Assembly: GCA_047495785.1 (NCBI GenBank)
Contig: JBLDXI010000042.1
Location: 1,426,001-1,490,000, forward strand
Direction of reading: 5' to 3'
Length of the DNA: 64,000 nt
From: Lepidodermella squamata
Taxonomy: Eukaryota; Animalia; Gastrotricha
The notes under the pieces were generated by a model. The model ran no database searches. It was not told the origin of the DNA and saw only the letters and a list, made by a program, of their open reading frames with translations. The position numbers were made by a program, and so were the translations under genes. Shown one piece after another: positions 9,190 through 46,296 of the stretch (position 1 is the stretch's first letter; each line of letters opens with the position of its first letter).

Positions 9190-9400
9190 GAAGCCGAATT
9201 TTCTTGGCCAAAGGGACCCGGAACTTGCGCTGCTGCCGTTTCAGCAGTTTGAGCATTAGCTCTTGGGTTGATGACGTCATTCAAATCGGAGACGAGAGGC
9301 TACGTGGCGATGCTCGGAGTTGGCAGGCTGTTGGAAGCAGCTATTTTGGCCTGCGTGAACTTATACGCACCTTTCACGAAGGGTCCACGAAGGATTGCTT
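9190..9400 (-). pseudogene. Decayed fragment of a LamG exon from the cluster family
   Basis: PSIAT*PLVSDLNDVINPRANAQ...VPGPFG matches PSIATWPLVSDLNDVINPRADAQ of gene C, with TGG changed to TAG and frameshifts. Confidence 0.8.
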
Positions 9401-9702
9401 CGAATTTCAATTTGGAACAACTTAGGAAACGAGTGAGCGATCATATGGTTCACAAAATTCATATATATTTCATATTTGTAGAGCCGGAATGATTCAATAA
9501 TTAAGTGCACTTTTTATTCAAAGAAAATACCTGAGAAAGAACTAGCCAGAAGTCGAATTTAAAATCGAAATATATCTTATTTCTTGATTTTACCGCGCAA
9601 GGTAATTCAGCATAGGTGAACATACCAATACCACAAATAAACTAATTAACATAGGTGTATTATGATGTCTGCATCAATGAATTAACGTTGCAGCTTCTCG
9701 AG

Positions 9703-12700
9703 TTACTTGAGCGCTGGAATCGAGTAAAAAGCACAGTTGATTTCCAGTATCAACATTTCATCGACAGTCAAAGCGCGATCAAACACGTTCAGGCAAGCAA
9801 TGCTACCCATCAAAGGAGTATTCGGAGTATCCCAAGATCTAAGATAAATTCAAAACAAAATTGGGAAAACAGGGGCGAAATTGAAATTTACCCAGCCAAA
9901 CGGAGCGACCCATTTTGAGTAATAGGTCGCGAAGAAGTTGTCGATCCGCCAATGTAGTCGCAGTAGAAACTCAACGTGCTCATCTTGTACGAAATCACAA
10001 GGAAATGCCAATCAATACCTTGCTGACACGTTACCGATTGTTCTATTGACTGAGATATCCTAACAACGAAATTCAACGTCGGATTTGAAATAACTTTGAG
10101 GCCCTGCGCCTGCCCAACTGGAGAAAATTCAAAAATAGTTCTGTTTGGCTGCTCCCCATTTGTCGCAAAGAAGGCAATGGTGAAACTCCCGTTGCTCAAT
10201 TTGATCTTATCAGCTGTCACTGCGATAGGCTCCGTGGTGTTGAAGTAAAACGCCGTGTTATCCACCCCGAACGGGCCGGGGACGAGCGGAAAATCGGCAT
10301 TTGACGCCTGAGCATCAGCATGCGGGTTGATCAAATCCTTTAAATCGGAGACAAGAGGCCACAAAGCAATACGGGAAGACATTGATGCAATTTCTTTCAA
10401 GCTGGGTGACAATATTTGATTTGCATGAATCTGCAGGCACCTTTTACGAAGTATCCACAGCTGTTGAATGGTGAGCGCGCGTTTGAAAATTGATAGGCAA
10501 GACATGAGACCAGAATATGAAGTGGAGCTGGCAGAGTTGTGACCGATCTCTAATATCCCGCTAGTAGCGACTTGCATGACCATTCGTATAGACTTTCTGT
10601 CACATAAAGCGGTTACTTCCTGAGTTGCCTTGTCATAGATTACGGCAAGAAAGACCCAGCTTAAATATGGCCTTCGGCAAGGAAATGTCAAAAAGATCGA
10701 TCCTGTTAAGTAGGCAAATAAATATACATTATTCTCTACATTATTCTCTTATAGTAGACCGCTTAATCACGAGAAACGAGAACAACAAAAATGTGCTACT
10801 CCCGTGTTACGGTCCACATTTCGATAATTGGAGCGAGCTCGGGTGATTTTTTACTGACTTTCCAGACATTTTACAAAACAAATCTGAATCTCCAGCTATG
10901 CAAATACTGAATGTTTCGACCTAGTATATTTGACAACATGTCCGCCGCACACCCAGATGGTTTAGCGGGAAAAGATCGTGTTTCGTGTTTCAATAAATGC
11001 GAAATACGCATGCCATGTTGCGAAAATTCCGAGAAAATCATCTCAATCTTAAATCTTAAATCTTAAAATGAGCTCTGTATGAGCTCGACCTAAACTCAAC
11101 AGGCTATAAGTTACACATATCACATTAAAAAAAACTCAGTGATTACCGAGCTAAAATGGCGACTCGGTGATAACCAATTTACATGTTAATTGATTCCCGG
11201 CAAAACTGAGCGTGCACCAGGAGGTGATTACCGATTTTTTTCAGCGACGAAATCGGTGAAACCCAACCGAAAAATAGGTGAAAACCGACTTTAAAGTACA
11301 TTTTTACCGATTTTCTGCCAGGTTATAACCGAGGGATTCAAAACAAGCTCCGTCATAAAAATGCAATATGAAGAAGGATATGAACTTGTAACCCTACTTA
11401 AGGTCCCAGGTGCCGGTAACCATTGCAGATCGACTTCTAACATGTTTGAAAGAATCGAAGACAAATAGCTTGATGTTGAGTTGTGTCGTCGGTTGGAGTC
11501 GAACCCGGGTCGCCTTGCCAAAGAGGTGGACGCGCTACCACTAGACCAGCTGGTCACGCTTATTCAGTAAGGGTTAATAGGGGTATATAAGTCTATTTTA
11601 ATTCATTTTTGACTCAAGTGTAAGGAAAATAGGTAGGGCGATTTGCTCTCAGAGCACATGGAAAGAGGTGCACATTTCCAAATCCCACCTCGAAACGTGC
11701 CAGGGTAAAATTCAAAAATTCCGCTTTTTCCTTCTTCACTCAAATTTAATAAAATAGACGTATGGTTACTTTTCCGCTTTTTAAATTCAGCTATTACATT
11801 TCCGCCGATTTTTTTTCCGCTATGATCATTTCCGCCTAATGTCTTTTCCGCTACACTTCCGCCAGTGATATTTCCGCCAATCAGCTTTCCGCCGAAGTTG
11901 ATTTCCGCCAACAACATTTCCGCTATATTGCACTTCCGCTTTTTTGGTCTCACGTCAACTATAAAAATCTCAAAACCGAGACGAATAGAAAATTGAGGAC
12001 AGCTGAAGCGTTAATTAGGCATTTCGAACTAACACGTTTAGCTAAAAGCAAGATAATTTCCCTTAGTTTTAATTCACATGATATATAAGATACGATCGAA
12101 ATTCACTCGAATCATTACACTAATCTGAAGGAAGTTCAAATCTTACATTACTGGTCAATCTGTTGTATTGGCACTTCAGCCTTTTGCGCCGTTGCTAACC
12201 TACTCGCAGCCGCTGAACGGTTTCACGACGAAAGGGAAACCTCTAAAGTTAAATTCTCAACACGTTTTTTTCCTTGTTGAAAACCTTACCTTTCAGTGAC
12301 TTGTTTGTTGCAATGATTGGCGGAAAGATTGGAGGCAGAAAACGTGCATAGCGGAACTGCCAGTTGGCGGAACTCTTGATAGCGGAAGTGTGTTTTAGCG
12401 GAAATGTGTATGGCGGAACTCGTATTGCAGCGGAAATGAACGTATGGCAAGTTAGGATGATCACCTCCTAGTTCACCCCGCCCTAGGATGGGGGAAGAAG
12501 ATCTTTTGAGACCAACAGGGCGAAGTTGTTCTCTCTAAAAGATCATTCCATTACTAAATCAAGTGTGGAGAATCCAAAAATCAATATTAGAAGCTTCCAG
12601 CTATTACGGTAAGAGATCGAGCACGTTCACCAAGATGACTCAAGATTTCCCCTATGGGGATACCAAGGCGCCAGAGGGGCAAAAATTCGATTTTTTTGAC

Positions 12701-15700
12701 CAAATGATTTTTCAACGGTTTCTAGAATAAATTGAAATTCTTATCGTAAAAAACGCAAAATATTTATCAGAATCGGAAATTTTCGATAGCGCTTGGAAGC
12801 TTGACAACATCTCGAGAGGGAGTTTTCCGCCATTTATATGAACATTTCTGAAATTTAAACTTCAGCTGTTCATAACAGTGATTACTATCGCAATTTTCGC
12901 TACCTTCTCAGCTACCTCGGCTACCAACGTTTCGTCATTTTCGTGGCGACGTGGCCATGAAACGCTGCAGAAATTGAGATTACAAAAATGAGACGCAATT
13001 GTTTTTTAATTGGATTTTCTGAGTTTGCTTTTGCAATTAGATCAGGGGTAGCTATTGCGAGCATGATGCTTTATTTTTTCAAAAGCCCTAAAAGGGGGGG
13101 GGGTTTGTAAACGGGACGGGTGGTAATAACGGGTATATTAAGCTATTACGGAATATACGGCATCTTTTTCATCAAACTTGAGTGAAGAAATTAGGGGAAA
13201 ACGCGGAATTTTTGAATTTGTACCCTGCCCGTTTCTAATGGGGGTTTAAAAATGTGCATTTATGGGGGGGAATTTTGATTTTTCGTCAAGTCCGGGCGTC
13301 GCGCGTCGCCTGACCTCCTCTATGTTCTAGCGCAAAAACTATGACGGCTAGAACAATTCTGTAAATTGCGCTGAACTCAGCATGGTCGAATTACCTAGAA
13401 ACCGCTGAAAAGACAAGAGGTCAGAAAAATCGACTTTTTGGTCTTCCGGCGCCTTGAGTTATCATTGTGATCTATCTGGATCTCTAATCGTAACTCCTGG
13501 AAGCTTCTAATATTGATATTCAAATTCCCCGTACTCGATTTAGTATTGAAATGATCCTTAAGAGAGAACATGAACGCCCACAGTCATTCGACGAAATGAG
13601 GTTGCAGGTCAAGATGACACCCTAACCTAGCCTAACTCAAGTTGACTGATGAAGATCTCTGGAGACTCACTATTTGGAGATGAACACTCTTGAAGATCAT
13701 TTCAATGTTAAATCGAGTACGGGGAATTTGAATATCAATATTAGAATATTAGAAGACAGGAGTTACGGTTAGAGATCCAGATAGATCGAATTCGAGAAAT
13801 CGATAATTTCATCGATCAATAATCGATAATCGATAGCTGAATATCGATTTTCTATGCAATTCTTAATACACTCAATTAGCTTCAAACAATCTTAAGACCC
13901 TTGAAACGCTTCAAAATGGTGCTCAACCAAGTAAAAACTCGGATATACCGGGTTTTTTTCATTTGTCAAGTTTAGAACCGACTTTCTTCCCGGTTATACC
14001 GGAATTTGGCAAAATATCGGTTGCGAACTCAGTTTTTCCGGGATTCAACGCCGAAAGATAGTAATCACTAAGTAAGTAAGTAAGTGATGACTGATTTATT
14101 TTTTACTGTGTTGGTACACTATGCTTATGCTTAGTATCAGCCTGATCAATCTTGATGAAGTGAAACTGTAGTAACAATACCGTCAGCAGATAGTTGAGCA
14201 CGCTGTTGAATTGCATTGTAGTTCAGGCTTAACTGTCCCGGTTTGTTACCAAAATCCAATATTGGCGCCGAGAAAAAAACACCAGAATGCACGTAAAGAG
14301 AAAGAGTAAACGAGGACTCGCCGAAAGCTAACTTGTCATTGGCAATAGTCGGATAGCCAATTGTGGTATCGATGCCAATTGTTGGATACAACGAGCCAAA
14401 TTGCCCAGCGTCATATTGCAGGGAATCACCAGAAAACGAAGCATCTATGCGATTACCACTGACATCTTTCAAACCATACGTCGGAGTAAGTGGTAAGTAA
14501 GCCACTTCAAATGGTAGTCCAAATGGCGTCTCTAATATCAGTAACGAAACAACTTTGAAATGAATTTATCTATGAATCGAGAACTGACGATTTTCGCATA
14601 GCTCCAGCATTGCAAACGGTTTATCAGTTGGTGCGACGGGCATTGCCACGGTCTAGTGTGAAAAATCCGCATTGGTGGAATTAGTATTATTTACGTTTCT
14701 AAACTCACCCAGCCCAAAGGACATTCGCTGGAAAGCGGCATACATTTTGCAGACATGAGTAATGCATTTGTGCACAATTTGAACTATTTAATAGCGAGGC
14801 GTTAGGCATCAAAAACAATCGGAATGAAAATTACTCTAATATCTTGTCGGCAGGAGAAGTAGTTGAAAGCGAAAGTTCCATTTGAATAAACCTTCTGGAA
14901 AACGGTTTTTCAAACAATCTGATCTCATTTTTCGCTATCGAACTAACCAATGGAACTCCTTCTGGGCACGAGGCTGAATCTTGGCACGTATTCGGATGTC
15001 CTCTAGTTGCGCATTGATAGGCACTCTTGAATTATTGAAATAGAAACATTAAATCATCATTTAGAGACCCTTACGCCTGTGTTGCAGCTTTCTTCAGAGG
15101 TATAATTTAGGCCCCCAATCTGATCAAATTAATGAACACAAGACAATCAAAATTGCGAAGACTGACATTATTCATTGAATCGGGACATTTAACATCATTT
15201 AAGCAGCCTTTGAAAGACAGGTCGTCATCGTAGCAGCGAAGAAATGTTGCGACATTGGTGTCTACGTTCAATATTTAGAATACTATTACACGAAAATCGC
15301 GATTTGTGAAACTTACTCGTACAACCAGCGAAAGAGTCGTAAGTCTGTTGAATTTCAGTTGGTTTCTAGTAAATGCAATCCACAGGAACAAATAAAAATA
15401 AAATCCGTTGAAAATAATGTTATTCATGTCGAAGCCTTAACAAAGTTCCATTTGCTCCTTGAAATTACTAATGAGACGAAACACTCACCGTCTCGGCGGG
15501 GCAAGTCGAGTTGACAGGAATGCACACTACACGAGCTTCTGTCAACCGATCAATGCAAGCTTTGTGGCGACCCTGGAGAGAATGATCTTCATAAAATCCT
15601 GCATTTAAGCCGTCAATCAAGCAATTCTTATACCTGAATTGCGGTTTGGCACGTTTGAAAGCTGTTGGCGTATAGTGCTGAGGCTATTCCAATCGCTCCG

Positions 15701-17686
15701 AGCTAGAAAATAATTACAATCAGCATTTCTAAGCTTCCACTCATTAGTGTTAGCTAACGTCGAATTTGTGTAATCCTTCTGGGCAAGAATCGAGGCAGCT
15801 GCCACCTGTTGTTGCGTCGTAACACATGTTGACAGCCTATTTCAAATTATCAGTATTCAGACGGAAATAGACTATTCAAATCTGACCCCTGTTTCGCAAG
15901 TGGCCTTTGTAGAGTAGACGGTCAGGCCAGGTGTCTAGCAAGCCAAACAAGCAAACGGTAAGGGCATCCAGACTAGGAAAGGGAACTCACCGCTGTTCCT
16001 TCGCATGGAAGCTGGGCAGGTTGACAGCCCAAGAAAACAGTGTGTCCTACGTCGAAACAGCGACGATGCGGGAACATTGACGGAGGCGCTGTGAAAATGC
16101 GTGGAATTAATTCAAAAAAAGCTAATTATGAATTTTCAATAAACCTGATTCGCATTCGCCGAGATTCGCAAATGTCACGCTGGTTGAATACTGGTTGGTG
16201 CTGCCAGGCGGGCACGATTCGCTGCCATCAGCTGGAATGCATTTCTTGAAGACAAACGTCACAGGATCCAAGCATAAAGTCTGCTGCTTCTAGATTAGGG
16301 CAATAAATGAAACCCTGATTTACGTTCTATTTCGAGCAAAAAGATACATTGTATATGGCAAGAAACGCTAGACATTGGCCATAGTTGAGACTGAATTGTT
16401 TATCGTTGTTGAATGTGGCAACCTGTTGGGGGAATATGAACAGGTGCTAATTTCATGAAGAAAAACACTCACCAGACTCATGGGATCTCTGCATATTCCC
16501 CGGCAGACTAGCTTCGGGCCAGATTTGCAGAGAGCGGCCGGCTAAAATTAAGAGTCATGGATTTGAATGAATTGTCGATCTTGCAAAGCGACCAACCCCA
16601 GTAGAACAATGATCCTTGTCAACATATATACCGCCGCTATAGATCTAAAAAATACAAGAACCTTGAAATTGATGCGAAATGAATTCCAGATTCGGGCATT
16701 TGCGTGAATATCAAAAACTCATCTATTTTGAAATTTTGAATTGAGGTTCCTGTAAAACAAGCCTGTGTTTGCGTCGCCATATCACAGCCCGTTGAATTCA
16801 GCAGACAGCCAGCGAACGAACGATCAGTCGCCGAAAAGCAGCGAACATGAGCCGAAAAATTCAAACTTTTTGGAGCTGAAAACATAAAGGAAGTGCTGCT
16901 AGTCTGGAACGATGTAATTGAAGAGACTCACAGCCGACTTCGGAGAGGCACTGGTTCATCGTAATTACCGGCCTCACTTCACTCTGCATCCAATAGAAGA
17001 AACATTTCATTATTTGTTAAAAATAGGTGAAATTCTGACCCAGCCAGATAGGCAGCTGCTATCCTCGGGAACGCACAACAATGCTTGGCCTTTCTTGCAA
17101 AGCTTAGCTGGTTTCGTCTATACATTTCAACAAAATTCAAAAAAGTGAAAAATGCAACTGATATTCAATTAATAACCATATAAGGCCGAATATCAGCGAG
17201 GCAGGCTGCGTAGCGTTGCCCGAACACTTCGCCAATGTAATCCTTGTGCTTCATTGGTGATAAAATAGCCTCAGTTAAATTATATAATAAAGTAGGGCTA
17301 AATTTACCGTAATTTCGTCCGAAGAACACGACATGATTTTTGGGAGACATCTGAGCGTGTAGAGTTTGGTGTTGTAGCAACTGTGAGCGGACTAGTAATG
17401 AGAACCAGGCTAATTAGTTTGCTAGAAAGTCGAGCTGTCAAACTCACGCCTCCCTTGCACGCATTGTATTGCGCGATTGGAGAGCCCAACTGATTGGAAT
17501 AAATTAACAATTATTTCTGATATTTCTGATTAGATTCTTCGAGTAGCTCACCTGAATTTCTTCGAATATAGAACACGCGGCTTTACAATCGATAAAGTCA
17601 TCGTTCCACCTTGATACACATCGCACGTAGCAGTCACTAACTCTGAAAGCCATTGATAGAAGGAAAAAGGCTGTGACTAAATGCAT
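9703..17686 (-). CDS. Cluster gene A: secreted protein, 12 four-Cys modules + 2 LamG/ConA-like domains (26 exons, roughly 1000 aa)
   Basis: Signal peptide MHLVTAFFLLSMAFRVSDC. Micro-exons splice in frame and match genes B and C exon for exon. LamG-like motifs AYLPL...LKDVSGN, FTLSLY, WxFLAVxYD, YSGLMSCLSIFKRALT. Stop TAA at 9703. One GC donor at 16761-16762 and a 3.5-kb intron at 10703-14180. Confidence 0.85.
11483..11559 (-). repeat. tRNA-derived sequence (SINE head or tRNA pseudogene)
   Basis: A box TGGTCTAGTGG and B box GGTTCGACTCC at tRNA spacing; acceptor and T stems do not pair. Confidence 0.6.
11668..13787. mobile_element. Nest of non-autonomous TIR elements in the large intron of gene A
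   Basis: Inverted pairs at about 11668-11760/13160-13260, 12525-12740/13385-13570 and 13465-13570/13682-13787. TTTCCGC/GCGGAA subterminal arrays at 11770-11940 and 12320-12440. Confidence 0.7.
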
Positions 17687-18775
17687 ATTGACGATTCTAT
17701 TGAAATGAAAAAATAAGAAATGAATTACAACGGAGAATTTTCAGACAATTAAAAAATATAAATCGCTCGCTCAATTCGTTCACATAAGCAGGACTGAACT
17801 GGAAAGTCACTGAAATAATTGGCTGCGGGGACAACATTAGTCGACCGATTTAAAAAAGACTAAAATCTAATCTAAAAAAGACAATATGGAAAAAATATAG
17901 GCTAGTGTGACATTTTCACTGCTCTCGGCCGTTTCATCATGAGTTAAGAAAAATGGTGCATAATACCTCATCTCGAGCAGCGCAAGCTTCTAATACATAA
18001 TTATTTTAAACTATAACATCACTCCCCTGTTTGCTAATCGTAATTCGTTTTTCGAATACGAATACATGGGCTGTTATGGAGCTAGTTGTAAGATTCCTAT
18101 TCTGACTAAGCCTGTAGACCAAGCCTGTAGACGTCACGGGCACAAAGCTCAAGGATGAATCCGCTTCAGAAAGAAATTGATCTGATATCAAATGAGTTAT
18201 CTACCAAACCTACCAATTTTTTCGTCGGTTCCCAAACTTTTCGTCTCATAGGAGAGAATGGCTCGTATAATGGCTTGCTGAAATTTGGGTGGGGAAGGGT
18301 ATATTTTTTGAGCTACAAATTTCACACAACTATTTATTTTTAGGGCGGTGAAACAGGCCCTATGAATATGGGTGTGGGAACTTTTGATGCGGAAATCGAA
18401 AAGCTTTTTATTTTGTCCTTTTTCCAAACCACCAAGAGTTAGCGAACCCACTAGTGTTTTACGTATCCTTTTGTCTTATTCCAATTCTACGTAACAATTG
18501 TTTGCAGAAAATGGCCGTCCTTCTTTCAGTTCGCTGAGTTGAAAGGCACAATTGGCAATAATTAAAATTGCATCTAAAAGGGAACATTAAAGTATTAAGT
18601 ATTGTGGATAGCCGCAGAAAACGCAGAAAAGCTGTAACTTTAATGATTGAGTTCACATTGAGCGGTTACAGTATAGAATTCGCAAATAATTAGCTAACTT
18701 TCTCATGTCGAGATATATTCAATTATTGACGCAATGTTCATGTATCTGCTTCAGTTCGTGGTGAATCTTCTGGAA

Positions 18776-21700: not shown

Positions 21701-23546
21701 CAGGGCAGGAATCAAGGCAACTGCCACCCGTTGTAGCATCGTAGCACATATTGATATCCTATACGGAAAACATCATTCTTCAGATGAAGCTTCAACACAA
21801 ACAAGCCACCAAATTCTAACCCCTGTTTCACAAGTGGCCTTTGTCGAGTAGATTGTCATCCCAGGTGTCTTAAAAGCAACAGTTAAGGATGATCTTACTA
21901 AGAAACGGAAACTCACTGCTGTCCCTTCGCATGAAACCTGGGCAGGTTGGCAACCCAAAAAAACAGTGTGTCCTACGTCGAAACAGCGACGATGCGGCAA
22001 CATTGACGGAGGCGCTGCGAAATAAGTCCGAATTAATTACAAAAACAATTATAAATTGTTGATGAACCGGATTCACACTCTCCGAGATTTACGAATGCCA
22101 CGCCGGTTGAATACTGGTTGGTGCTACCAGGCGGGCAAGATTCGCTGCCATCAGTTACAATGCATTTCTTATACATGAAAGTCACCGGATCCAGACATGG
22201 AGTGTGCGGTTTCTAGACAGAAAATAGATATAAAACCTTGGAAAAATCGCTATTTCGAGAAATAATACGTTGTATTTGACAAGATAGGCTAGACATTGGC
22301 CATAGTTGACATCAAATTGTTTATCGCTGTTGAATGCGAGCACCTGTGAAGTGGTGATATAAATGCAACGAGATTTCTCTTCAAACAAACATACCAAACT
22401 CATTGGATCTCTGCATATTCCACGGCAGACTAAAGTTGATCCTGATTTGCATAGAGCTGCGGGCTGGAAAAAAAATGTTGAAAAATAATGGTCCGTGGAA
22501 ATTATTGGAAATTTGCAGCGACCTACCCCAGCGGAGCAATGATCTTTGTCGATGTAAATACCGCCACTGTAAATCTAATAACAAAGAGCATCAATAACAA
22601 GTTTATTTACAAATCATTGAGACCTGAGTTTGTTTCGAATCATCGCAGCCTGGTGTAGCCAACATACAGCCAGCGAATGAGCGATCCGTTTTCAAAAAGC
22701 AGCGAACGTGTGGCGAATAATCTGAACTTCTAGGAGCTGTAAACAAAACATTGTTTTATTCATACAAAATGTATAAAAAACTGTTCGACTAACAGGCATG
22801 CTGAGCTAGGCAATCTTCCATTGTGATCGATGGCAAAATGAATTGCTGAAAAAGAGTAATGAAATTGCGAAATTAAGTTGATGAAAAGTGAAAGAAATTC
22901 TCACGAAATATGCTGGGCAGTCCATTCCATTTGGAACGCACATCCAGGTGGCGCCTTTTTGGCATAACTTTGCCGGCTTTGACTGTCAAATTTACAAAAA
23001 TTAGATTAAAAATTATACTGAATAAATATCACCATAATTTGACGAATCTCAAGGAGGCAGGCATCGTAGCGAGGTTTGAAAGTCGTACCGATGTAATCCT
23101 TGTGCTACGATAAGAAAGGATACCAATCATTATGAAATTCCAGGCTAAATTTTACAGTAATTTCCGCCGCTGAACACGGAGCAATTTTAGGCAGGCATCT
23201 GAGTGTGAACAGTTTGGTGTTGTAGCAGCTGTGAGCCGACTGATGATGAGAAATAGGCAAAGTTAGTTGGAGGTATTAGGAATAAATAAGGTTTTTCCAA
23301 ACTTACTCCGCCCTTGCATGACGTGTAATCGGAAAGGGCTTGGCCCAACTGGTCGATAAAATTGACAATTACGGAAATATGTTGATGTTAACAGCTGAAC
23401 CTAACCTGAACTTCTTCGAATAGTGAGCAAGTCGCTTTGCAATCGATAAACTCGTCGTTCCACCGCGATATGCATCGCTGATACGTGGCGCAGTCACTGC
23501 TGCAAACCACGACAATGGCAAGGAAGACAGTTTTGAGTAAATACAT
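18776..23546 (-). CDS. Cluster gene B: secreted, 12 four-Cys modules + 2 LamG-like domains (26 exons, most compact copy)
   Basis: ATG 23546 gives MYLLKTVFLAIVVVCSSDCATYQRCISRWNDEFIDCKATC. The GT-AG exons read join in frame and end EINCAFYSIPALK with TGA at 18776. Confidence 0.88.
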
Positions 23547-24112: not shown

Positions 24113-24960
24113 AATGACAATTCTTGTAGCAAGAAAAGGCGTGAAATGAGCCGAGGCTGAGTTGTAGTATCAAGGAATTAAAATTGTCAACACGGCAACG
24201 TTGCAGATGTCGGAATCAGGACTGAACTAAAAAAGGCTGGATTGATTGACAGCGGAGACAAAAATCAGGCAATCGATATGAACTAGAAATAAGACAATAG
24301 ACAATACTTTATGGACAAAACCTGAAACTAAATAGGCTGAGGTGGCACATTTGAAAATCATAACCTGTTCCTAACCAGTACAAGAATGTTCTGAAAAATA
24401 AAGATCAAAGGCTTGCCTGATTTCCGGACAATTCACATATTGCTATTTAGGACGAAAAAGATGAGCATTCCAGATTTGTTCATCAACTAAAATTTGAATA
24501 TGATTGTCTCCTTTTGTAAGCCAAACTGCTGGACCGATTATGAAACCTTCATCCGTCTAATATGGAAGTAACGAAATTCTTTAATTATTTCCTCCACGCT
24601 GAAGGGAAGTGGACAGTTTGCTTTTGGCTGAATTCCCACAACTTCCAATATCTAACTAAAAGTCAACTGGGACAACATTTTGTTCTAGTTTCATCCTTTC
24701 GAGAATTGTCCTAGCTGCCAATTATTTCAGAATTTATTAGTTCAACATTGGGTTGCGAAATGCCTGACCGCAATGAACGTAGCCAGGCGTTGTGAATCGC
24801 GTGTCGAGTCTTATGTTTTTCATCGTCGTTTTTCAAATTCAACAAAATTCGTATCGGATGAAACCGAGTTAAATTAACAGCCTAATCTTAATTTCGACGC
24901 TTTGGCGATGGTATTATTGTAGGGGAATATTTGTCCTGATTCGCCGTTGAATACCAATTG

Positions 24961-25360
24961 ATGCTCTCCATGTCAGTCATCGATGTTATTTTCGTCCTCC
25001 ATGCAACAATAGCTTCAACGATTGCTATACAATGCTTGACGTGTGCTGATAAGGCGCCCTATTGTTACAATAAGTGCGTCGAAGGGCTCGATTGCAGCCG
25101 ATTGGCAACAGCGACTACTTGCAATTTCGAGGCTCAATTTTGCAAATTTCAATGGTCTGCTCTCACAGGTTTTCTCTATTCAAAAATATATGGCCTTTTC
25201 ACTGACTTCGAACTTTCCAACAGCTATTACCGTTTTAAGTTGCGCTACGTCGGATGATTGCCCAGTAGAACAACTAGAGCCTAATCTTGGTGGAAACAGC
25301 GGCAGCATAAGGGACGTTGCCTTATGTTGCGATTATGATGGATGCAACAGCGTTGGTTAG
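24961..25360 (+). CDS. Ly6/uPAR (three-finger) domain secreted protein
   Basis: Hydrophobic leader, then IQCLTC...C...C...C...C...FC. A 55-nt intron (25169-25223) joins in frame to AITVLSCATSDDC...LCCDYDGCN, the diagnostic CCxxDxCN end. A further GPI-signal exon is possible. Confidence 0.8.
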
Positions 25361-31600: not shown

Positions 31601-34600
31601 ATTGCACGGGGATTTTCGGCGATCAGAATTGTAGGCGGGAAGAGAAACAAAACTCTCAATTTTAAATATGAGGTACCTGCTACTAATTTGAACTCGGCAC
31701 CGTAATTAGAGAACTGGAAGTCGAGGCTAAACTCGGAAGATGCATTACGGAAATGGAGCACCCGCGCATAGTTCCAGTTAAGTGAATTGAAGTACAGCGA
31801 TATCGTAAACGAAGAGTTGCCTAGAGCGAGCTTGTTGTTGACGATAGTCGGATGACCTTGAGAGGAAGAGAAATTCAGCCCGGAAGAAGCGGTCCTGAAC
31901 GGTCCATATGCGTAATTTTGGGAAGTTCCATTGAACGTTGCGTTGACGTCATTTCCGCTGATATCACTCAGGCCGTATGTCGCAGTCAACGGCAAGAAAG
32001 CAACTTCTGATGGCAATCCAAATGGTGCCTCTGAAATTTTCCATACAGCCAAATAATTTCTAGATAAACAACAAGGCAAGGCGTACGATTTTCGCAGAGC
32101 TCGATGCTTCGAAACGGTTGATTGCCGAGAGCTGTAATGGTTTTTGTCTAAAGTATAACTCTCAACATCAAGTTGCTTTCTCAACATTTCAAACTCACCA
32201 TTCCTGATGGACATAGGCTTGAAAACGAAACGCATTTCGCCGTCATGAGCAATTCATTGGCGCAGATTTTGAACTGTAATAAGATAGCTAAACATACAGG
32301 CAATTATTGATTTCAATGTACGAAGTAGAATTCATTGGATTGAATTTGGGTTTCTTTGAGCTTTTTTCGCTCAAGCTGGGGTTCAGAGGTACGTACCCAT
32401 TCTATTTCGCACATTGACTGCTTTTGAAACGTACCCCGCTGATATCTAGTCGGCAGGATTCGTAATTGACGCCAAAAGTTCCATTCGAATAAACCTTCTA
32501 AACACAAACACGGGACTTTCATTCATTCAATTCATCAGAATCAAAGTACCAAGGGAGCTCCATTTGAACATGAAGCCGAATCTTGACAAATTGAGGCACA
32601 TAGGTAGGCGCTCTGTAGTTTTCAGTAGATAAATTTGAGCAAGTTGGAATTTTCAGAAAACTCTCACTCCAGAATTGCAGCTTTCCGCAGAATTATATGC
32701 TACGCCTCCAATCTGCTTCAGGTCAAATCAAATCAATAAGTGAAAGCAATCGCGATGACTAACGTTATTCTGGGAATCGGGGCAACTAACACCACTGACG
32801 CAACCTTTAAACGATAGCTGAGCGTCGTAGCACCGCAAAAATTGCGCTGCAATAAATTATACCGCAATTGAAACAAATTAGGTTTGAAGGCGCTAAAAGC
32901 TCACTGTTGCAAGCCGCAAAGGAATCAGAAGTGGCTCCATTTGGATTCGGTTTCTGAAAAACAAACACAATGAAGAGCAGATGAAACTATAACATTTAAC
33001 CTCGAGACAATATCTATCCAAGCAAATAATGTACATCGTAAAAAATCGAACAACTTTCAATGTATACCTATCCCCTTCTCTTTCTCATAAGCGATTTCAT
33101 CATTATATGAGAAGATAGCAGTTCACAATAATTCATGCTTCTTTGCCAATCTTCAACCCATTTGCCGCCAATCTACCCCGATCGGCATGGCTTATCATTG
33201 CCGGATTCGTCCAGTTGGGAATAGGCATTTTAAGAATTTACCCATTAAGAATTAAAAAAATATTGCCAGACATAAAACAAAAAGCAGAATCTTCGACTGT
33301 GGGGGCGGGTGAGGATCATTCTTTACCTGCCTTCGCCCTCTTCAAAACCGGATACGGTACATGACGTTTAGTCCCGAAGAGGAAAAATAAAACTATATTA
33401 TTATAATTTGTAATGGGACTAATTCTCGCTACAATTTTTAATTTCTAAAATGTTATTAGTGGTGAAAAGAATACTCACGGTTCCACCAGGGCATGTCGAG
33501 TCAACCGGTATGCAAACAACGCGAGAATTTGTTGTATTATCGACGCATGATTTGTGGCGACCCTGAAAAAGAGCCCAATAAGAGGTCGTCGATTCGAATC
33601 AAATGGAGAAAATACGAAAATACCTGAATCGCGGCCTGGCATGTTTGAAAATTGTTGGCAAACGGAGCTGAAATGTTTCCGACGCGCCCAAGCTACATCA
33701 ATTTAAAACATTTAACCCCGCGCTCTAAATCTGAGATCGTAAACTTACGTCGAATTTGTTCGCTCCCTGAGGGCACGGAACGAGGCAACTGCCGCCAGTT
33801 GTAGCGTCGTAGCACATATTGACAGCCTATATATGAAAGATGAGGAATCATGGCAATCTAACCCTTCAATCTAACCTCAGTTTCACAATCAGCTTTAGTC
33901 GAGTAGATGGTGGTTCCAGGCGTCTGGGGAATAAAGGATAGGGTTTAAGCTCGTTAGGCTTTAAGTCGAGGCATGAACTCACCGCTTGTCCACCACACGG
34001 AAGCTGGGCAGGTTGGCAACCCAAGAAACTCGCCTGTCCCGCGCTAAAACAGCGCCGATGTGGAAACACCGACTGAGGGGCTGGAAATAATAAGTCAAGT
34101 GGAAGTCACAAGGCAATATGAATTTAATTCAACGAACCCGATTCGCACTCGCCCAGGTTTGCGAATGTGGCTCCGGTTGAATATTGATTGGTGCTGCTAG
34201 CCGGGCAAGATTCGCTGCCATCAGTGGGTATGCATTTTTTAAAGGCAAAAGTGTTCGGATCCAAGCATAGCGTTTGTTGTTTCTTTAGGCAAGAAAAACA
34301 TATCAAAAGGAAACAAAAGTAATCAGCGTACGTTGTATTTAACGAGGTAGGTCAGACATTGGCCGTAGTTGTTATCGAAGCGATTATCGCTATTAAATGT
34401 TGAGACCTAGAAAAGACAGCGAATTTAAGATGAGTGGATGTCTATCAGCAGTAGCATACCAAGCTCATTGGCGATCTGCATATTCCCCGGCAAACTAATG
34501 CGGATTCTGATTTGCAGAGAGCCGCAGGCTGAAACGTTTGAATCGCAATTTAAATTCCTGGCATAGGTTAATAAAAATGTATGGCGACGTACCCCAACAG

Positions 34601-37600: not shown

Positions 37601-39610
37601 AGCAAATGAGCGATCCGACTTGGAGAAACATCGAACATGAGGCGAAAAATCTGGTACTCTGGCGGCTGGAATCAGAATAACACCGCATTTAATATATTTG
37701 TTGTACGCCTATAGAGGATCTAAGCTTCTACGGCAAAGGCTTAGCCTATACGGGATAAGCGATATTGTAAATTGTCATAGCGGCCAAACCGTGAGGGTCA
37801 CTATGGATCATCATATATCAATCGATTGCTGTAATCAAGGGTTATCGATTGGTGCCAAATCGAAGTCCACATTCAGGGTCATGTTTTGACCAAAAAACTC
37901 GAATTTTTCGAATTTTTTAAACTTTGAAGGCAAAAATCATATTTCCAAAAGTTCCGCGCGCAATTCGATCTGGCACCAATCGATTGATATATGATGATCC
38001 ATAGCAGTGCTTCTCAAACTTCATTTTTCGGCCGCATGCGGCCCGCAGCCCGATTTTGTGCGGCCCGGAACTCAACTAGATAACTTGTATTGGTTGCGGC
38101 CCGCAAGCCTTGTTATCAATCATTTTTAAATAGCTTTAAGGTCCAAGCGATGCCCGGAAGTCCAACAATAGGGTTCCTATGAATCATCCATAATCTAATG
38201 CATTTTTAGCCCATTTTCGGGTTGAAAATGCCCAAAAAAGCGTCAGCCAAAGCTCGCGAATTGAATTTTAAGTAGCTTTTATGCCGCAAAATGTTTCAAA
38301 CAAAAATCCTGGCTACCCTTCCTTATTTACGCTTCATTTACGTTCATTTACGCTAATCAATTTTTTCAAATGCCCTCAAGGCCCGTTCTTGAACATTTGG
38401 CGTAAATAAATTTCAGTTATGATTCAGTAGTTTCTTTTTGCGATGAGTGGAAATAATTGCTAGCTTAAAAAAATTGCTCATAAAACTTGATACTTATTTG
38501 ATAATTCTTAATACATACTAAATACCTACTCATGAATGCCTAATTTTTGTTAATTGTTTTTTATTTCAAATTTCATTGCAATAAAATTAGCGACTAAACA
38601 GCAATTTATGTTGAACTTTGCCCACATTTTAAACATGTGGCCCGATGTGTTCTTAAAATACAGTGGTAGCGGCCTGCAAGGATGAAAAATGAGTTAGGAA
38701 ATGGCCCACCACGGAAAAAGGTTGAGAAGCACTGATCCATAGTGACCCTCACTGTTGGGCCAGTTTTTCAGTGGAATATAATGCTCTACCCGATAACTGT
38801 ATCAAGCCCCGGCGGCCCGAGTGCCGAGCTCCGGCCAACACATACGGACTCGGACCCCAACAATGCCACTTACCTTTGATTTTAGTAAGGCACTTGTTTA
38901 AGCTGGATCTCGCTGTCTTTTTAAGCTGAGAATTAAGAAAAAAAATTTTGGGGGAAATACAAAAAATGAAATCGATTTTCTCACCCATCCCGATGGACAT
39001 TTGCTTTCATAAGGGACACAGGTCTGCGCCGAACCATTGGTGCACTGCAAAGCCCGATTCTCCTGCAAAATTTCGGGTAAAATAAAAAACATGGCACAGA
39101 AGTAGAATAGGTACCATATATGGCCGTATTGTGTCGATGCAATCGTCATAACGGGGCTTGAACGTCAAACCCGTGAAATTTACGTGCTGTTGAGAAAACA
39201 ATTTACACATTGAATGATAGAATAAAACAAAAAAATACCGGAATTTCCTCCTTAGTACATGAAACGAGTTGGGGCAGGCATCTCAGAGTGAACAGCTTCG
39301 GATTGTAACAGCTATGGGCAGACTGAATTGAAAGCATTTATTAAATAATTTGCTTTAAAAAATAGAAATATTCAAATTACGCCTTGCTTGCAACTCGCGA
39401 AATCCGGACGTGTTGGGCCCAACTATTACAAAGATAATATTACCGATGAATTGGTATGAATCAGAACCGCCTTACCTGGACTGCTTCAAACATGTCGCAT
39501 TCTTTTTTGCAGGCAGTGAATTCGTCGTTCCAACGCGATATACACCGCTTGTAGCAGTCGCCACGAGGAACGATTGCTGCCAGTATGAGAGCAGTTGATA
39601 ATAAATTCAT
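28696..39610 (-). CDS. Cluster gene C: secreted, 12 four-Cys modules + 2 LamG-like domains; three introns inflated by TEs
   Basis: ATG 39610 gives MNLLSTALILAAIVPRGDCYKRCISRWNDEF. Same exon series as A and B. Large introns at 29734-31676, about 34642-37552 and about 37667-38872. Ends EINCAIYSIPALK with TAA at 28696. Confidence 0.85.
33277..33405 (+). mobile_element. About 130-bp 3' stub of the same RTE family as 5198-7680
   Basis: acaaaaagcagaatcttcgactgtggggg...gtcccgaagagg plus a TAT tail aligns with the LINE 3' end (about 5198-5330, minus). Confidence 0.9.
34719..35656. mobile_element. hAT-like non-autonomous element
   Basis: CAGGGTT...AACCCTG termini, gtaaaaac subterminal repeats, 8-bp TSD ggtataat/ggtttaat. 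Confidence 0.75.
36708..37119. mobile_element. Tc1/pogo-like MITE
   Basis: TA then ccgtatttcatcaaataata ... tattaatcgatgaaatacgg; internal gctattattcgagggg repeats. Confidence 0.8.
37358..37393 (+). ncRNA. Minimal type I hammerhead ribozyme (Penelope-like element type)
   Basis: GGC CUGAAGA U GGAC AGUUGC GUCC GAA ACGU C GCC: full catalytic core, stem II GGAC/GUCC, stem I GGC/GCC, palindromic ACGU as stem III. Predicted cleavage after GUC at 37390. Confidence 0.8.
37782..38761. mobile_element. PIF/Harbinger-like MITE interrupted by a hAT MITE
   Basis: GGCC termini, long TIR gtgagggtcactatggatcatcatatatcaatcgatt, 3-bp flanks agc/agt. Confidence 0.75.
38005..38734. mobile_element. hAT (Charlie-like) MITE
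   Basis: TIR cagtgcttctcaa/ttgagaagcactg, perfect 8-bp TSD atccatag (37997-38004, 38735-38742), gcggcccg subterminal repeats. Confidence 0.92.
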
Positions 39611-40299
39611 TCTAAATAAATTACCCGGTTTAAAAAAAATGAATGAAATGAGAAGAAATAAATGAAGCCGTTGATTTTCCACCGACATTTTTTATAACGT
39701 GGCGTCTTGAAATCGCGTGTGAAAAAAAATCACATTTGAAAGTGATGATGTCATTACCCACCGACGCTGCTCTTTTCGATGTGTTTCTTATCAGGGTCCA
39801 GCAACTTTTGAACTATTGTAATCGCATTGAAAAATATGTTTTTCTTAATTATAAATTTGGCCGAAAAAAAGCATATCTCATAAATTCTTGGGAAAAAATA
39901 TCAGAAAATCAGGCATTTTTTGACGGCCATAATGTACCAAACCCTGTCGCGCGAATCGGCTTCGTTATCAGGAAAATCAATATCGAAAAATCGATTATTT
40001 GTACCCTGCAAAACTGTGTTGCGTAATCATGACTCATTGCTCACACGAAGAAAAAACAAGCTGTGAGAAATTTTAATGTAAATGCGTATCAACAACACAC
40101 TTGAAATTCAACCCCTTAGCATGTGCCAGGAGCTCAGAGGACATTTTTCAATAATCATCGGTTGAAGATTTTCTGTTTGAAATCTTTCTTTAGGAATCCC
40201 ACTTGACAACTCTATAGTTTGAATCCTCCTTAATTTCAAAACCAGTGAAATTTCATATTTTTGGCTGTAAGTTTTCGACATTTTTTTGAGGCTTTAAAA

Positions 40300-40756
40300 C
40301 CTGACTTCATGAAAAAACCGAATGATGCGAACATGCCAACGATTTCGTGGCAAGCCTTGCCGTCACCCAGAAGGGCGAGGAACTGCACACCCACTCTGAT
40401 CTTGCAACCAGGAATTTCAATGCCGTTGAGACAAAGGTCACGCATCGCTTCCAGAAAATCGGACAGAACAACACGCCAAGGATTGTCGCCGCCAAACTTG
40501 AATTCTCTCGCGTTAGCTATGGCTAGCGGCACGTGCGAAGTGATTCGCGAACGGATATACTGCCAGAGGTTAGAAGGTTGCCATTGAATTATTCGCATCA
40601 AGTTGCTTCCGCGACGGGCACAGCGTGGAAAGTATCGCCAGGGACGCCAGGGACGACGAGGGTAGTACCAGGGACGCGTCCCTGGTAGGTTTAGGAGTCG
40701 AGGCGTCCCAACCAGGGACGCCGTAGTACCTGGTAGGTTAGCATTTTCCAGAGGTG
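40300..40756 (-). mobile_element. CMC/EnSpm-like transposase fragment next to a CAC terminus
   Basis: LEAMRDLCLNGIEI...LALLGDGKACHEIVGMFASF resembles the GDNLxxHxIxGFxxSF motif. ccagggacg repeats at 40637-40735; terminus CACCTCTGG at 40756. Confidence 0.55.
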
Positions 40757-42199
40757 GAATTGGGGCGGTTTGGGTTGGTGTACATATATGGGGTGCGGTG
40801 TGGGTCATGGTTTGGTGCGGGTTGGAATGGGTTGGGTTGCGGTTAACCCATATGGGTTGCGGGTTATTTAACCCACATTATCAATTTTTGATATTAAAAG
40901 GGCTGTCATGTTTTAAAACATCGGCAAATACTCTGCTAAACACAGCGAAGCCATTTACGTTTCCCTATCAATTCCAATAATTTGAAAGTTACACATAACG
41001 ACCAACAAAGCGCAATTACATTTTGTTTGCTATTGAAATTCATTCATTCGCTTGAACTCATGTTTTTGCTTCGGCGGATTGTTTTCTGTGATACATTATT
41101 CAACGACAAATGCTGTGCCTGAATCGCTCACCGGCATTGAAGCGGTCTAGGCAGCAGCGAATAAGCCAAAACAGTCGAAAATAGTGAAATATTGAATAGA
41201 TCTGAGTTTCGCCAACATTTGACGGCGGGTGAATCTCATTTAGTTTTTTTTTGACGTAGAATCCCATTTTGCTAAATTTTCTGCTAAGTTCTAATTACAC
41301 CTGCCATATATGGCGGCATTTGGTGTTTGACATTCAACCCATGCGATTTTATTCACACCTCTTTTGTGTCAAGTCGAGCATAGCTTACCATCCGCCAAGA
41401 TTTTTGTTTTGAAAATGCCGTTCTGATTTCAACCCAAATTTCATGAAAATTTGGAGGATAACAGATGGAATGATTATAATGGATAACAGATAATCATTTG
41501 GTAATAAATTCATCCGGAACTGACGCCTTACGGAATCGAAAATATGATTATCCAATTCGATGTTATGTGACGAATGGCCCCTGCCCCGTTGACTAGACCT
41601 GCGTCTCATGGGATGAGCAAGATATACTAGTATTACTTGCCACTACAATTCAGCGGATAGCCTAGCTTAGGTAGTCACCAGGATCACCTGAGGAGCTTTA
41701 TTAGAAATACGGTGTGTTTAATTGTTCGGTTCGGAGTTTTAACCAAGTACCACAAGTACTATTGCTCCAAGGGAATCACCAGTGAGCTCAAAACGGTACT
41801 TATATACTGGAACATATCTCGATCCGCGATAAAAATGCTATCAAAACTTTTATTTATGAATCTATCAGGGATTCAGCTTCATTTTTTATTATTAATATGG
41901 CTAAATTGTTCCAAGAATTTTTGTAAATTTCAAAGGTAATTCTGAGAATGCCGGGGGAACCCCCGTACTGCCACCGTTTGTGTCGTGGAAATCTTTGTAT
42001 GCCGCCATTGTGCATGCACCATAGTATGCACTCATGCAATCACACCAAGCACATCGTGAAATGGCACAATGCGATTGTACTGCCATGTGCAAACCATGGC
42101 TACACAGCGCTTCACAGCCCATATAATATAGAGTCATTCCAACCACTCCATCCACTTGAACCTTCAGGTAAAACTTCGTACACGGACGGAGAAGAGTAC

Positions 42200-42490
42200 C
42201 CGCGCATCTTGTTTCGCGATTATTGGTATACATGGCGCACAGAGAGAACTTCCTTCCAGCGCAGGAGATACGAACCAAACCGTTGCCAACCGCCTCGCCC
42301 TTCCTGCCGTCGCCAACAGTGAATTTTCAATCAGGAACGTGAGCAATAAAGTTGTGAAGGACAGCTCGATCAGAATCCATGTGATTTACCGCAGCTTTTT
42401 CTGGCCGCTTGCCGATGTAAAAATAGCAAGTTTTACGAGAGTGAAACTGCGGCAAAGTGATATTGCGCAAGTGAGTACGGAGACCACCTG
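42200..42490 (-). mobile_element. Degenerate Ty1/copia gag-protease fragment
   Basis: AVNHMDSDRAVLHNF...*KFTVGDGRKGEAVGNGLVRI resembles the copia HMxxD...VGDGxxxxAxGxGxV region; it contains a stop. Confidence 0.5.
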
Positions 42491-42495
42491 TCATA

Positions 42496-42677
42496 TCGTT
42501 AGCGCCTTTGAATAACTCGGATTTAGGCTTGTTTGCATCCATTTCAAGGTGATAGGTGACAAGTAAAAAGCTGTCTTTTAACATGAATGAGAAGAGGCAA
42601 AAACAAAAGACTTTTTACTTTTTACTTGTCACCTATCACCTTGAAATGGATGCAAACAAGCCTAACGACGCTAACGA
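42496..42677. mobile_element. Second copy of the 27540-27728 MITE
   Basis: tcgttagcg...gaataactcggattt terminus and the same core; the right TIR has a small deletion. Confidence 0.85.
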
Positions 42678-43614
42678 AATGTATGAACCAGTGGTTCTCA
42701 AACCCTGGCACGCAGAGGGTTTTGATTTTTGACTGCGTATGCTAACCGTGCCCCAAGAAGTGAGAAGAACCGTTTTATTCTCATTTTGAGAAGTGTTTGG
42801 GCGTATTTTGGGGTAAAAACCCAAAATGTCCTCCCTTCGCTCGTTCAATTTGTTCGAATTTCACTAACGTAAAGTTCACAAATGCGGAAATTCATCCCCT
42901 CCAGCTCGGCTAGACAGGACAAGAAAATGAGAAATTAGACAGATGTTTCAGCAGAAAACCTTTCTCGCTTTGCTCGCCCATGACGAACAAGAGTTTTGTG
43001 AGCGGCAGCTTTGGCATCGAAATCGTCGACGATAAACTCGAAAAGAACAGCGGGTGTTTCGATGGTTTCGGATTGCAGAATGTCAACGGGAGATTAGAGT
43101 TGGCTTGAAGTTGCCCTTTTTACCGTGTTTTTCTGGCCATTACCGAGCATTCTGCATGCTTTAATAAGCTCTCATAAAACCGAATTTGCCGTGATTTGAA
43201 TTCGCCACGTTTTACGAGCTCGCTCGAAACAAAACAACCGCGTTTTTACGAATTAGCATTACTCGGTGGTCGGAAGTAGGTGTTACTTAACGCGTGATAT
43301 GATTCGAGGCCGCAAGCTTTATGCGTGAAAGAAATCCCGAACAACGGCGCCGCCGTTAGTTTGGAAGGAGTTGGACAATTTTGAACTGATGCAAATTCAG
43401 GGTGGTCTCATTCACGCTTCAAGTTGGGTCGAGGAAAACGTCGACGAAGTCTCATTTAATTGAACCGAGCCTAATTCTTATTACCCTTCTCCCGTCGACG
43501 TCGGTGCCATATAGTGTCAAAACAACAGAAGTGTATCGTCGCCTCATCAAGTATCTCGTCATACGACTGAAACTAACTGATAATGAAGTAACACGTAACA
43601 CCTCTTCCACATAT

Positions 43615-43724
43615 TATGAGACGCACGCCGAAAAAGAGCCGATATTGAAATTTATCTTTTTTTGAAAGGGGCATCAGATGACGCTTGAAATAATATCGAC
43701 TCTTTTCTTGGCGTTCGTCTCATA
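43615..43724. repeat. About 110-bp mini inverted-repeat element
   Basis: tatgagacgcacgccgaaaaagagccgatatt versus aatatcgactcttttcttggcgttcgtctcata. Confidence 0.6.
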
Positions 43725-44699
43725 TCGATAACTCGTTTTTCAGTGGTAATTCTACTCATAAATAACAAAAAATGTCTACATTAATGAACTGTTTACTGTT
43801 TTAATGTTTAGGAATGTAATGTCAAATTGGTTCCCCCGGCGCTACTGTAGCAGCTTTGCTGCTGCTGTTGCCAATTTGAATGCCGTATTTTCTGAACCCC
43901 CACCCCCTCTCGTTTAGTGCCCTGCCTCGTTTAAAAGCCTAGATATATCTGATTTTTAATAAATGGAGCCCTACCATGAATAGTAACCTGGGCGCATAGT
44001 ACGCGAAGATTAAACCCTCTTCGCTGCCCTAGCGCGCATGCTAACAGGTGAAAAAAGCCCCTTAAGCTCCTAGAGGTCCAGTCTACACTCGAGATGCGGA
44101 TGTTGCGCTGTTATCTGACCGCATGAGATGAGAGGCTGGAATAAATCGATTAAAGCTTCATTACTCGCCGCGCCGCTGGTGCTATTGGCGCCTCCTGTTT
44201 CTATTTCCGGGTTATATAGCCTAGTTTTTGTTGGTTTTCATATGGCTTCAATTTTGCATAACCTCGGGTTGGTTCAGCTTAAAATAGCTAAACATCTTTA
44301 GGTTCTAATAAATTATAATCTTTTCTCAGATATCAGACTAAAATCACGCATGAAAAACTATTAGGGCGCCGATATTTATAAACCTCTAACTTCAAACTCA
44401 AAACATATTTGTAGCTGAAATCGTCGTTGGTTCGGCTAAAAGTCCTATCTCTGTAAAACCGGAGGGTCGAATGGCGCCGGCTAGATTAGAATGAATTCAT
44501 GAATACCTAGCCATAAGTAAGATTCCTCTCATAGATTTGGCGAAAACTGAACATCTTCGCTCTTAGATCAATAAACTCTTCTCATTAAGATGAAATCCGA
44601 AATGTGCCGAACTTCGTAAACTGGGGATATCAACTATCAGTCTCTATACTGTGGAGATCATCCCCTAAACTTCAAAACTAGTTCGATGTTCGATCCCGT

Positions 44700-46296
44700 T
44701 AGAATTATTTTCCTGGCAATGCCGAGAGTGTTTAAGCAATGCTATGCCTCGCACGAAGACGATTATGAAATTGAATCTTTCAACAGTTCAACCTACCTGC
44801 CGAGACGGAACGATGACGTATCTGTTGCTGGGTACTGTCCATTACCTAAAACCAATGATTTGAAGTTACCATCGCATCCGAGTTGGACGACTTTGCTAAC
44901 AGCATCGAACGTCAACACGTAGAAGTGCCGCGGAATAGTAGTAGAGCCACTGGGTACAGAGCACGATGTAGAGAGTGTACTACCAGAGGCTAGCCCAAAA
45001 TCGGCAACGAATGTGGTCGCATCGTTGAGCTTGAGAAGCAAGCCGATGTTCGCTCGCGCCGAGTCAGAGAATTCGAGATACGGAGCCGGTGTGCTTTCGG
45101 GCTTTGCGAAGAAGCTAAGCGTGAAGGATTGCAGGCCGAAATTAAACTTGCTAGCCGTCATTCGAATCTCATTGATGTTTGTCAGGTAGATTACCTTTGT
45201 TATCGACTCCAAATACACTGGTTCTTGGTACGAACGGTGTTTGGCTATAGTAACCGAAGTTAGCGGGGCTATGATGTCGTACTGAGTGGGAAATACGCGA
45301 TGTGCCCGCTGATGACCTTCCTGCTGATATCCCCAGGCACTACGGGTTTGCCGGCATGAAGCTGGTGGCACTTCCTTCGAGGGGTGGGGAACTGCTTAGG
45401 AGTGATGATAGATTTGTAAACGGAGAAGCAAGTTGGGTAGCGGATAAGCGCCGGGCTACTTGAAAATCGTTGTGCCAGCACAATCGACCCAACTTCATTG
45501 GTTGGAGCAGCTACTGTTTGCTGACTATAGCTTACCGCGCTGTCACAGAAAGGTACCAGCGTATTTGTCGACTTTTCGTGGTAAACACCGACAAAACGCC
45601 ATTGATTATCGCTGGGAGGGCAGGTTGTCTGTATCGATGGCAAATTAACTGCTAAAAAATGTTCATATAAAATTAGTTCAAGTGTTGAATAGAATATTGA
45701 AAGGCTATTTGATTATTAAAATTGATGTGTATGCAAGCTCTAAAACACGTAGGATTAGAAATATAAATAGGTAAGTAAACTAAATAAAATGGCATAGAAA
45801 TAAATTACCATATAAGGCCGAATTGTGTCGATGCAAACATCGTAACGAGGCTTGAACGTCGACCCCGTGAAATTTACGTGCTGTTAGGAAAAAAATTACA
45901 TAATATTTCGATTGATAAAAAACAGAAAAATACCGGAATTTTCTCCTTGGAGCATGAAACGAGTTGGGGCAGGCAACTCAGAGTGAATAGCCTCGGGTCG
46001 TAACAGCTATGGGCAGACTGAATTCAAAGTATTAATTAAAATGAATTGCTTTCCCATTTTTTTTAATTATTTACGCCTTGCCTGCAGCTCTCGAAATCCG
46101 GATGTGTTCCAATCTACCGAGAAAATGTTCCGGGTGTTTTTATTGATCATAGCCGTCTTACCTGAATTTCTTCGAATAGGTCGCATTCTTCTTTGCAGGC
46201 GGTGAATTGGTCGTTCCATCGTGAAATGCACCGCTTATAGCAGTCACCACATCCGAAAACAGTAGCAAGAATAAAACAAGCTGATAATAAATCCAT
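44700..46296 (-). pseudogene. Cluster gene D: internally deleted, frameshifted paralog
   Basis: Four 5' exons are very similar to gene C (MDLLSACFILATVFGCGDCYKRCISRWNDQF...IRPYM). They are followed directly by the large LamG exon (acceptor near 45652) with incompatible intron phase. Frameshift near 45280; the last exon is decayed. Confidence 0.8.

Follow-up and report, generated by a model that had tools for sequence, protein, structure and literature searches.

A tandem family of predicted secreted proteins with four-cysteine stalk modules and paired LamG heads in the gastrotrich Lepidodermella squamata

Lineage-specific protein families that join a stalk to a lectin-type head and undergo tandem expansion are a known theme, common in invertebrates. 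The described proteins closest to those reported here are the snail VIgL lectins FREP, CREP and GREP, which are secreted, encoded by multiple genes, and built from an N-terminal IgSF stalk followed by a lectin-type head (PMC5433772). Here we analyze three paralogous genes, A, B, and C, and three broken relatives, D, E, and F, clustered in a 64,000-nucleotide stretch of the Lepidodermella squamata genome (GCA_047495785.1, contig JBLDXI010000042.1, positions 1,426,001 to 1,490,000 of the forward strand; hereafter the window, with positions counted from its first nucleotide). Like the VIgL lectins, A, B, and C form a multi-gene family whose products carry N-terminal stalk domains and a lectin-type head, and their secretion is predicted. 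The stalk, however, consists of four-cysteine modules rather than IgSF domains, and the head is of the Laminin_G_3 type rather than a fibrinogen, C-type lectin or galectin domain. The three proteins may work most like FREP, CREP, and GREP, if loosely, yet they are not VIgL members.

Other known proteins resemble A, B, and C in part. Gas6, protein S, NELL, and laminin are generally known to combine small disulfide modules with LamG domains, often as a C-terminal pair; their modules, however, are six-cysteine EGF domains rather than four-cysteine units, their genes are conserved and low in copy number, and they show no homology to A, B, or C. Pentraxins (PF00354) have only the head fold in common with the three proteins. 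The pentraxin signature HxCxS/TWxS (PMC3539679) is not found in A, B, or C, nor is a GQEQD-like calcium-loop pattern, and PF00354 gave no match on any head exon. Because both the signature and the calcium-loop motif are absent, we rejected pentraxin membership for the heads. A literature search found no description of the A/B/C family: the genome paper (PMC11660948) makes no mention of lectins or laminin domains, and a survey of rotifer secretory lectins (PMC8878817) makes no mention of such proteins.

The window is animal DNA with a GC content of about 41% and introns mostly of 47-67 nt. Comparison of the window with itself revealed three long and three short mutually similar blocks, all on the minus strand. 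Gene models were produced with an ab initio exon-finding script, which over-called exons inside long introns, and were then corrected by hand against the paralogs (Table 1). The reading frames of A, B, and C contain no internal stop, intron phase is identical at 25 of 25 positions, and 74 of the 75 introns are GT-AG, with 65 of the 75 measuring 47-67 nt. The proteins are 57-61% identical in pairwise comparisons and share 57 invariant cysteine columns. The stalk accounts for 48 of these and the two LamG domains for eight, while the remaining one closes the signal-peptide-like start. This exon similarity is not due to chance, since the stalk exons are 65-72% identical between paralogs at the DNA level whereas the short introns are only 37-45% identical. 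Nonsynonymous divergence (dN) in the stalk is 0.21-0.27 versus a synonymous divergence (dS) of 1.0-1.6; in the heads, dN is 0.34-0.50 versus a saturated dS of 1.6-2.6. Purifying selection on A, B, and C is strong, and the genes are old, constrained, and protein-coding. The gene structure is well supported and the family is real.

An earlier note on this DNA, made from the sequence alone, had described a signal peptide, 48 regularly spaced cysteines, two LamG domains and no transmembrane segment, and these features reappear in our gene models, Pfam searches, hydropathy values and inspection by eye. By eye and by hydropathy, residues 1-19 of each protein resemble a signal peptide that ends in an invariant Asp-Cys. 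Outside the N-terminus, every 19-residue hydropathy window scores 1.62 or less, with no membrane anchor in any of the three proteins; we therefore rejected a membrane receptor for want of a hydrophobic segment. The 48 stalk cysteines fall into twelve modules of about 46 residues with the spacing C-x(3-10)-C-x(3-8)-C-x(15-25)-C. Most modules are encoded by a three-cysteine exon plus a one-cysteine exon, while module 6 is contained within a single exon (exon 11). Modules three positions apart are more alike than others (mean score 32 versus 16, permutation p=0.00035), which arranges the stalk as four triplets; periods of 2, 4, and 5 were not significant, and a period of 6 follows from that of 3. 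Conservation is highest midway along the stalk, in modules 4-8 (66-91% identity), and the linkers between modules are just 6-17 residues long, without a conserved processing site.

We searched for relatives of the module and predicted its fold using the 48 residues of module 6, a weak test in that only one of the twelve modules is represented whole. Module 6 had no Pfam match at E values up to 10, and ten stalk exons likewise had no Pfam match. Its alignment found no match in metagenome contigs or in a set of 5.8 billion proteins, where searches covered proteins of 0.55-1.75 times the query length, a range in which full-length relatives could not appear. PDB sequences and an ESM Atlas feature search gave no match either. 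The predicted fold of module 6 consists of strands only, with a mean pLDDT of 83 (two of five models above 80). Foldseek, a check suggested in the earlier note, found no match to this model; VIA-align returned no Z of 2 or more, and the best TM score in the ESM Atlas was 0.45. To the eye, the hairpin and end motif of some modules are reminiscent of Kunitz domains, but these modules have four cysteines and not the six of Kunitz/BPTI. Neither in cysteine count and spacing nor in the profile and fold searches with module 6 did the module match Kunitz, EGF, TIL, WAP, CBM14, or ShK domains. Given that the query is short and that just one module could be tested whole, these results leave the module without a family match and do not establish a new fold.

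The C-terminal domains, LamG1 and LamG2, are 24-29% identical to each other and contain four cysteines each. Laminin_G_3 (PF13385), scored on exon 25 alone against a curated cut-off of 27.6 bits, matched A at 33.3 and C at 33.8 bits, above the cut-off, and B at 20.4 bits (E 6e-4), below it. The top matches to the heads in the ESM Atlas feature search were all PF13385, with a score of 0.98. A predicted model of exon 25, which covers neither domain whole, was weak (pLDDT 38, TM 0.26); nearly all of the Foldseek matches listed for it were ConA-like folds, with E values of 3e-4 to 5e-3. Judged from Pfam, ESM Atlas features, and some weak structural matches, both C-terminal domains belong to the Laminin_G_3/ConA-like lectin-glucanase superfamily, and they are probably of its LamG/ConA-like jelly-roll fold. 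What sets them apart within PF13385 is that they have no close sequence relative and that twelve unassigned modules stand before them.

In the 5.8-billion-protein set, over the same range of relative lengths, neither exon 25 of B nor the three-way exon-25 alignment found a close relative, and searches of metagenome contigs with the alignment and of PDB sequences were likewise empty. Among 1.84 billion representatives, the sole significant head match was an SVEP1-like protein of the mussel Sinanodonta woodiana (KAL3867860.1), with 38% identity across a 53-residue stretch that closes LamG1 (E 3.4e-6), in a pentraxin-type domain. This 3881-aa SVEP1/polydom-like protein carries vWA, sushi, EGF, and HYR domains, none of which was seen in the models of A, B, and C, and has no four-cysteine module; the likeness to it is limited to these roughly 53 residues. 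The earlier proposal of a lineage-restricted birth-and-death family with an unrecognised cysteine-rich region is supported by these searches, which found no relative of the module and one remote match to LamG.

Conservation is unevenly distributed along the proteins. Invariant non-cysteine columns make up 49% of the stalk versus 35% of the heads (Fisher p=3e-5), and within each head they make up 10-25% of the centre versus 45-62% of the ends. The central strands of the heads are the most variable large region. A Gln-Ile-His motif occurs once in each protein, invariant, in a predicted helical linker between the two heads.

The earlier note had reported three intact 26-exon paralogs on the minus strand, which our models support in full for B and C and in part for A. 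Because intron 7 of A requires a GC donor, A is just probably intact. Intron 7 has no in-frame GT donor alternative, and read-through reaches a stop at 16637. Apart from this position, the donor site agrees fairly well with the local consensus, which makes GC-AG splicing plausible; A could nevertheless have been broken recently. The single public sequencing run that covers the gene A stretch is not recorded as RNA and behaves as DNA: the joints of its contigs are unlike the predicted introns, and the contigs contain allele-like differences and other paralogs with no splicing. Among the differences listed between this run and gene A, none falls at 16761. In one of its contigs, seven of the ten differences over 14000-14981 fall in the 351-nt LamG1 exon of A; these change four codons and leave two silent, numbers too small to weigh. 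In a contig of the same run, a 16-nt segment inside this exon (14254-14269) contains five differences that alter two neighbouring residues and may mark an allele or a gene-conversion tract.

The three broken relatives noted before were found again when translated with stops marked and frames left unmended. The four 5' exons of D are 69-92% identical to C at the amino acid level. Directly after exon 4 follows a LamG region (about 45650-44793) that is 23-29% identical to A, B, and C and contains several frame changes and stops, with exons 5-24 missing. D looks less like a single decayed paralog than like a deletion that joined the 5' end of a C-like gene to a LamG gene of far greater divergence. 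Inverted-repeat elements in intron 24 of A are probably non-autonomous transposons. Nested inverted repeats resembling miniature inverted-repeat transposable elements were seen at 11669-13746 in this intron and at 37751-38792 in intron 6 of C, and a 130-nt repeat is common to intron 16 of C (33277-33405) and positions 5202-5331.

Table 1. Positions of the A, B, and C genes and of their broken relatives in the window.
Feature	Position	Strand	Description
Gene A	17686-9703	minus	26 exons, 1017 aa
Gene A stalk exons 1-23	17686-14589	minus	start and 12 modules
Gene A LamG exons 24-26	14531-14181, 10702-9892, 9838-9703	minus	
Gene A intron 7	16645-16762	minus	118 nt; GC at donor (16762), GT in B and C
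Gene A intron 24	10703-14180	minus	3478 nt; splits LamG1; several inverted-repeat elements
Gene B	23546-18776	minus	26 exons, 1021 aa; every intron GT-AG
Gene B stalk exons 1-23	23546-20348	minus	
Gene B LamG exons 24-26	20295-19954, 19798-18964, 18911-18776	minus	
Gene C	39610-28696	minus	26 exons, 1018 aa; every intron GT-AG
Gene C LamG exons 24-26	32030-31677, 29733-28899, 28834-28696	minus	
Gene C long introns 6, 7, 16, 24			1208, 2912, 525, 1943 nt
Exon 11	A 16289-16145, B 22212-22068, C 34282-34138	minus	sole exon with a whole module (module 6)
Relative D	46296-44793	minus	C-like 5' exons and distant LamG region
Relative D C-like exons	46296-46162, 46113-46075, 46017-45934, 45880-45809	minus	normal splice sites
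Relative E	24112-24056	minus	lone signal-peptide fragment of 19 codons, resembling A (68% identity)
Relative F	9420-9192	minus	LamG1-LamG2 junction piece with stops and frame change

We tentatively favour a secreted protein whose disulfide-braced stalk would present a two-domain head that binds microbes, particles, or self glycans, with paralogs differing in their targets, loosely in the manner of the snail lectins. Starting from the architecture, conservation, and head fold class observed, we infer how secretion, disulfide bonding, ligands, and site of action may fit together. The genes would encode secreted proteins of about 108 kDa. With signal-peptide cleavage just past the invariant Asp-Cys, an even number of cysteines, 56, would remain. 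Each module of about 46 residues would fold into a small domain rich in beta structure and closed by two disulfides, while the four ordered triplets would make a protease-resistant stalk that holds out the LamG pair to bind glycans or glycoproteins without pentraxin-type calcium sites. The paralogs keep the stalk and the structural ends of the heads while the central strands and loops of the heads vary, which may give them different specificities. Acting outside the cell, likely in mucus, at the cuticle surface, or in the gut lumen, they would bind or clump microbes and particles of food, or else glycans of the animal itself, working like FREP, CREP, and GREP but with a different stalk. In favour of this reading we count the architecture without a membrane anchor, the Laminin_G_3 matches in Pfam and the ESM Atlas, the ConA-like matches of the low-confidence exon-25 model, the KAL3867860.1 match, the greater invariance of stalk than heads and its drop in the head centres, purifying selection, the pseudogene neighbours, and the module 6 model. 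Several considerations weigh on the other side. Many LamG domains bind proteins, steroids, or nothing known instead of glycans, and the higher divergence of the heads may reflect relaxed constraint. Positive selection on the heads is not established, since head dN is well below dS, and stalk module 3 varies as much as the heads do (27-43% identity). A bolder version seems to us rather unlikely: here the four-cysteine module would be a new small disulfide fold whose ordered triplets serve as a stalk for general use. The family, on this view, would be a repertoire for secreted recognition that evolved independently and diversified strongly, in parallel to snail FREPs or amphioxus VCBPs, and in which LamG and C-type-lectin heads could replace each other.

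Close behind the binding-protein reading in likelihood comes a structural or adhesive role. The proteins could well be extracellular components of cuticle, egg-shell, basal lamina, or adhesive gland, in which the stalk would serve as a spacer or cross-linker and the LamG pair would bind matrix partners as in laminin and shell-matrix LamG proteins. The conserved middle of the stalk suggests partners of its own, the total of 57 cysteines is odd, so that one could be free if cleavage precedes it, and it is generally known that gastrotrichs have a cuticle and adhesive tubes and that temporary glues of related animals contain lectin-like and cysteine-rich domains. On the other hand, many paralogs with divergent heads and frequent pseudogenes are less usual for structural proteins, and A, B, and C showed nothing resembling mucin or collagen and no vWD, C8, or TIL region. 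Tandem LamG domains at the C-terminus after small disulfide modules also recall the familiar layout of Gas6 and protein S, and SHBG, laminin LG4-5, neurexin, and NEL are among the weak fold matches of the exon-25 model. These likenesses might suggest a secreted carrier or modulator that, like SHBG, Gas6, and NELL, would bind a signalling protein or a small ligand through its LamG pair, and growth factors through its modules; with neither EGF nor Gla domains, no sequence similarity to SHBG/Gas6/NELL-type proteins, and signalling modulators rarely found in birth-and-death arrays, we consider this improbable. That the heads are jelly-roll glycan-degrading enzymes is very improbable, even though PL7 alginate lyases head the Foldseek list (E about 4e-4) and Gln-Ile-His is invariant in all three proteins. 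The fold model behind that list is poor, and of the generally known catalytic motifs only Gln-Ile-His is present, in the inter-head linker, with RxExR, YFKxG, and the GH16 motif ExDxxE absent; a PL7 or GH16 identity was rejected on these grounds. Less probable still is a venom or defensive toxin precursor that releases small disulfide peptides, which repeated disulfide-rich modules in a secreted protein of an expanding family might bring to mind. Searches with stalk exons and module 6 matched no toxin family or fold; the botulinum-complex entries among the exon-25 fold matches reflect just the shared jelly-roll fold. A conserved processing site is absent from the short linkers, and conservation is greater in the stalk than in the heads, a pattern reversed in toxin arrays. 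We rejected this candidate as well.

The cluster is accompanied by other features. Between B and C, on the plus strand, lies a probably intact two-exon gene (24958-25360, intron about 25169-25223), whose product is probably a small secreted three-finger/Ly6-uPAR-like protein with a C-terminal CC...CN motif, no obvious anchor tail and a weak PLA2_inh match (21.3 bits, cut-off 22). Plus-strand exons at 59840-62400 encode two DOMON-like and PAN/apple domains, probably parts of one protein, secreted or at the cell surface, that may reach beyond these exons, and two tandem PAN/apple-domain exons on the minus strand (1684-2260) are 73% identical to each other. Also on the minus strand, 3532-8408 contains protein kinase exons (8408-7715 and 4896-4585) followed by an ankyrin-repeat frame (4461-3532), and between the kinase exons sits a 783-aa reverse transcriptase frame of LINE type (7647-5296); this is possibly a kinase-ankyrin gene interrupted by a retrotransposon. 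A decayed relative of the retrotransposon, 66% identical over about 410 nt, occupies 47639-49270 (minus). A tandem repeat with a period near 60 nt lies at 55861-56353. Two plus-strand frames had no Pfam match: one of 213 aa (57585-58226), which by eye resembles a transposase fragment, and one of 137 aa (50866-51279). An Rfam scan of the window gave no match.

What is new here is a lineage-restricted family, apparently undescribed, with a stalk module that has no family match, whereas the head fold and the birth-and-death pattern are known. The term undescribed system, for which the earlier note named it the best candidate in the window, overstates a single protein architecture that joins a known head fold to a small disulfide module of no recognised type. 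Because lineage-specific expansions of stalk-and-lectin-head proteins are common in invertebrates, general biology would remain unchanged unless the diversified-recognition reading were shown. To our knowledge, almost nothing is known about gastrotrich secreted proteins, and we know of no described immune or glue proteins from this phylum. The four-cysteine module merits a structure and a Pfam entry, and A, B, and C are concrete candidates for proteins that recognise microbes or that belong to the cuticle or a temporary glue.

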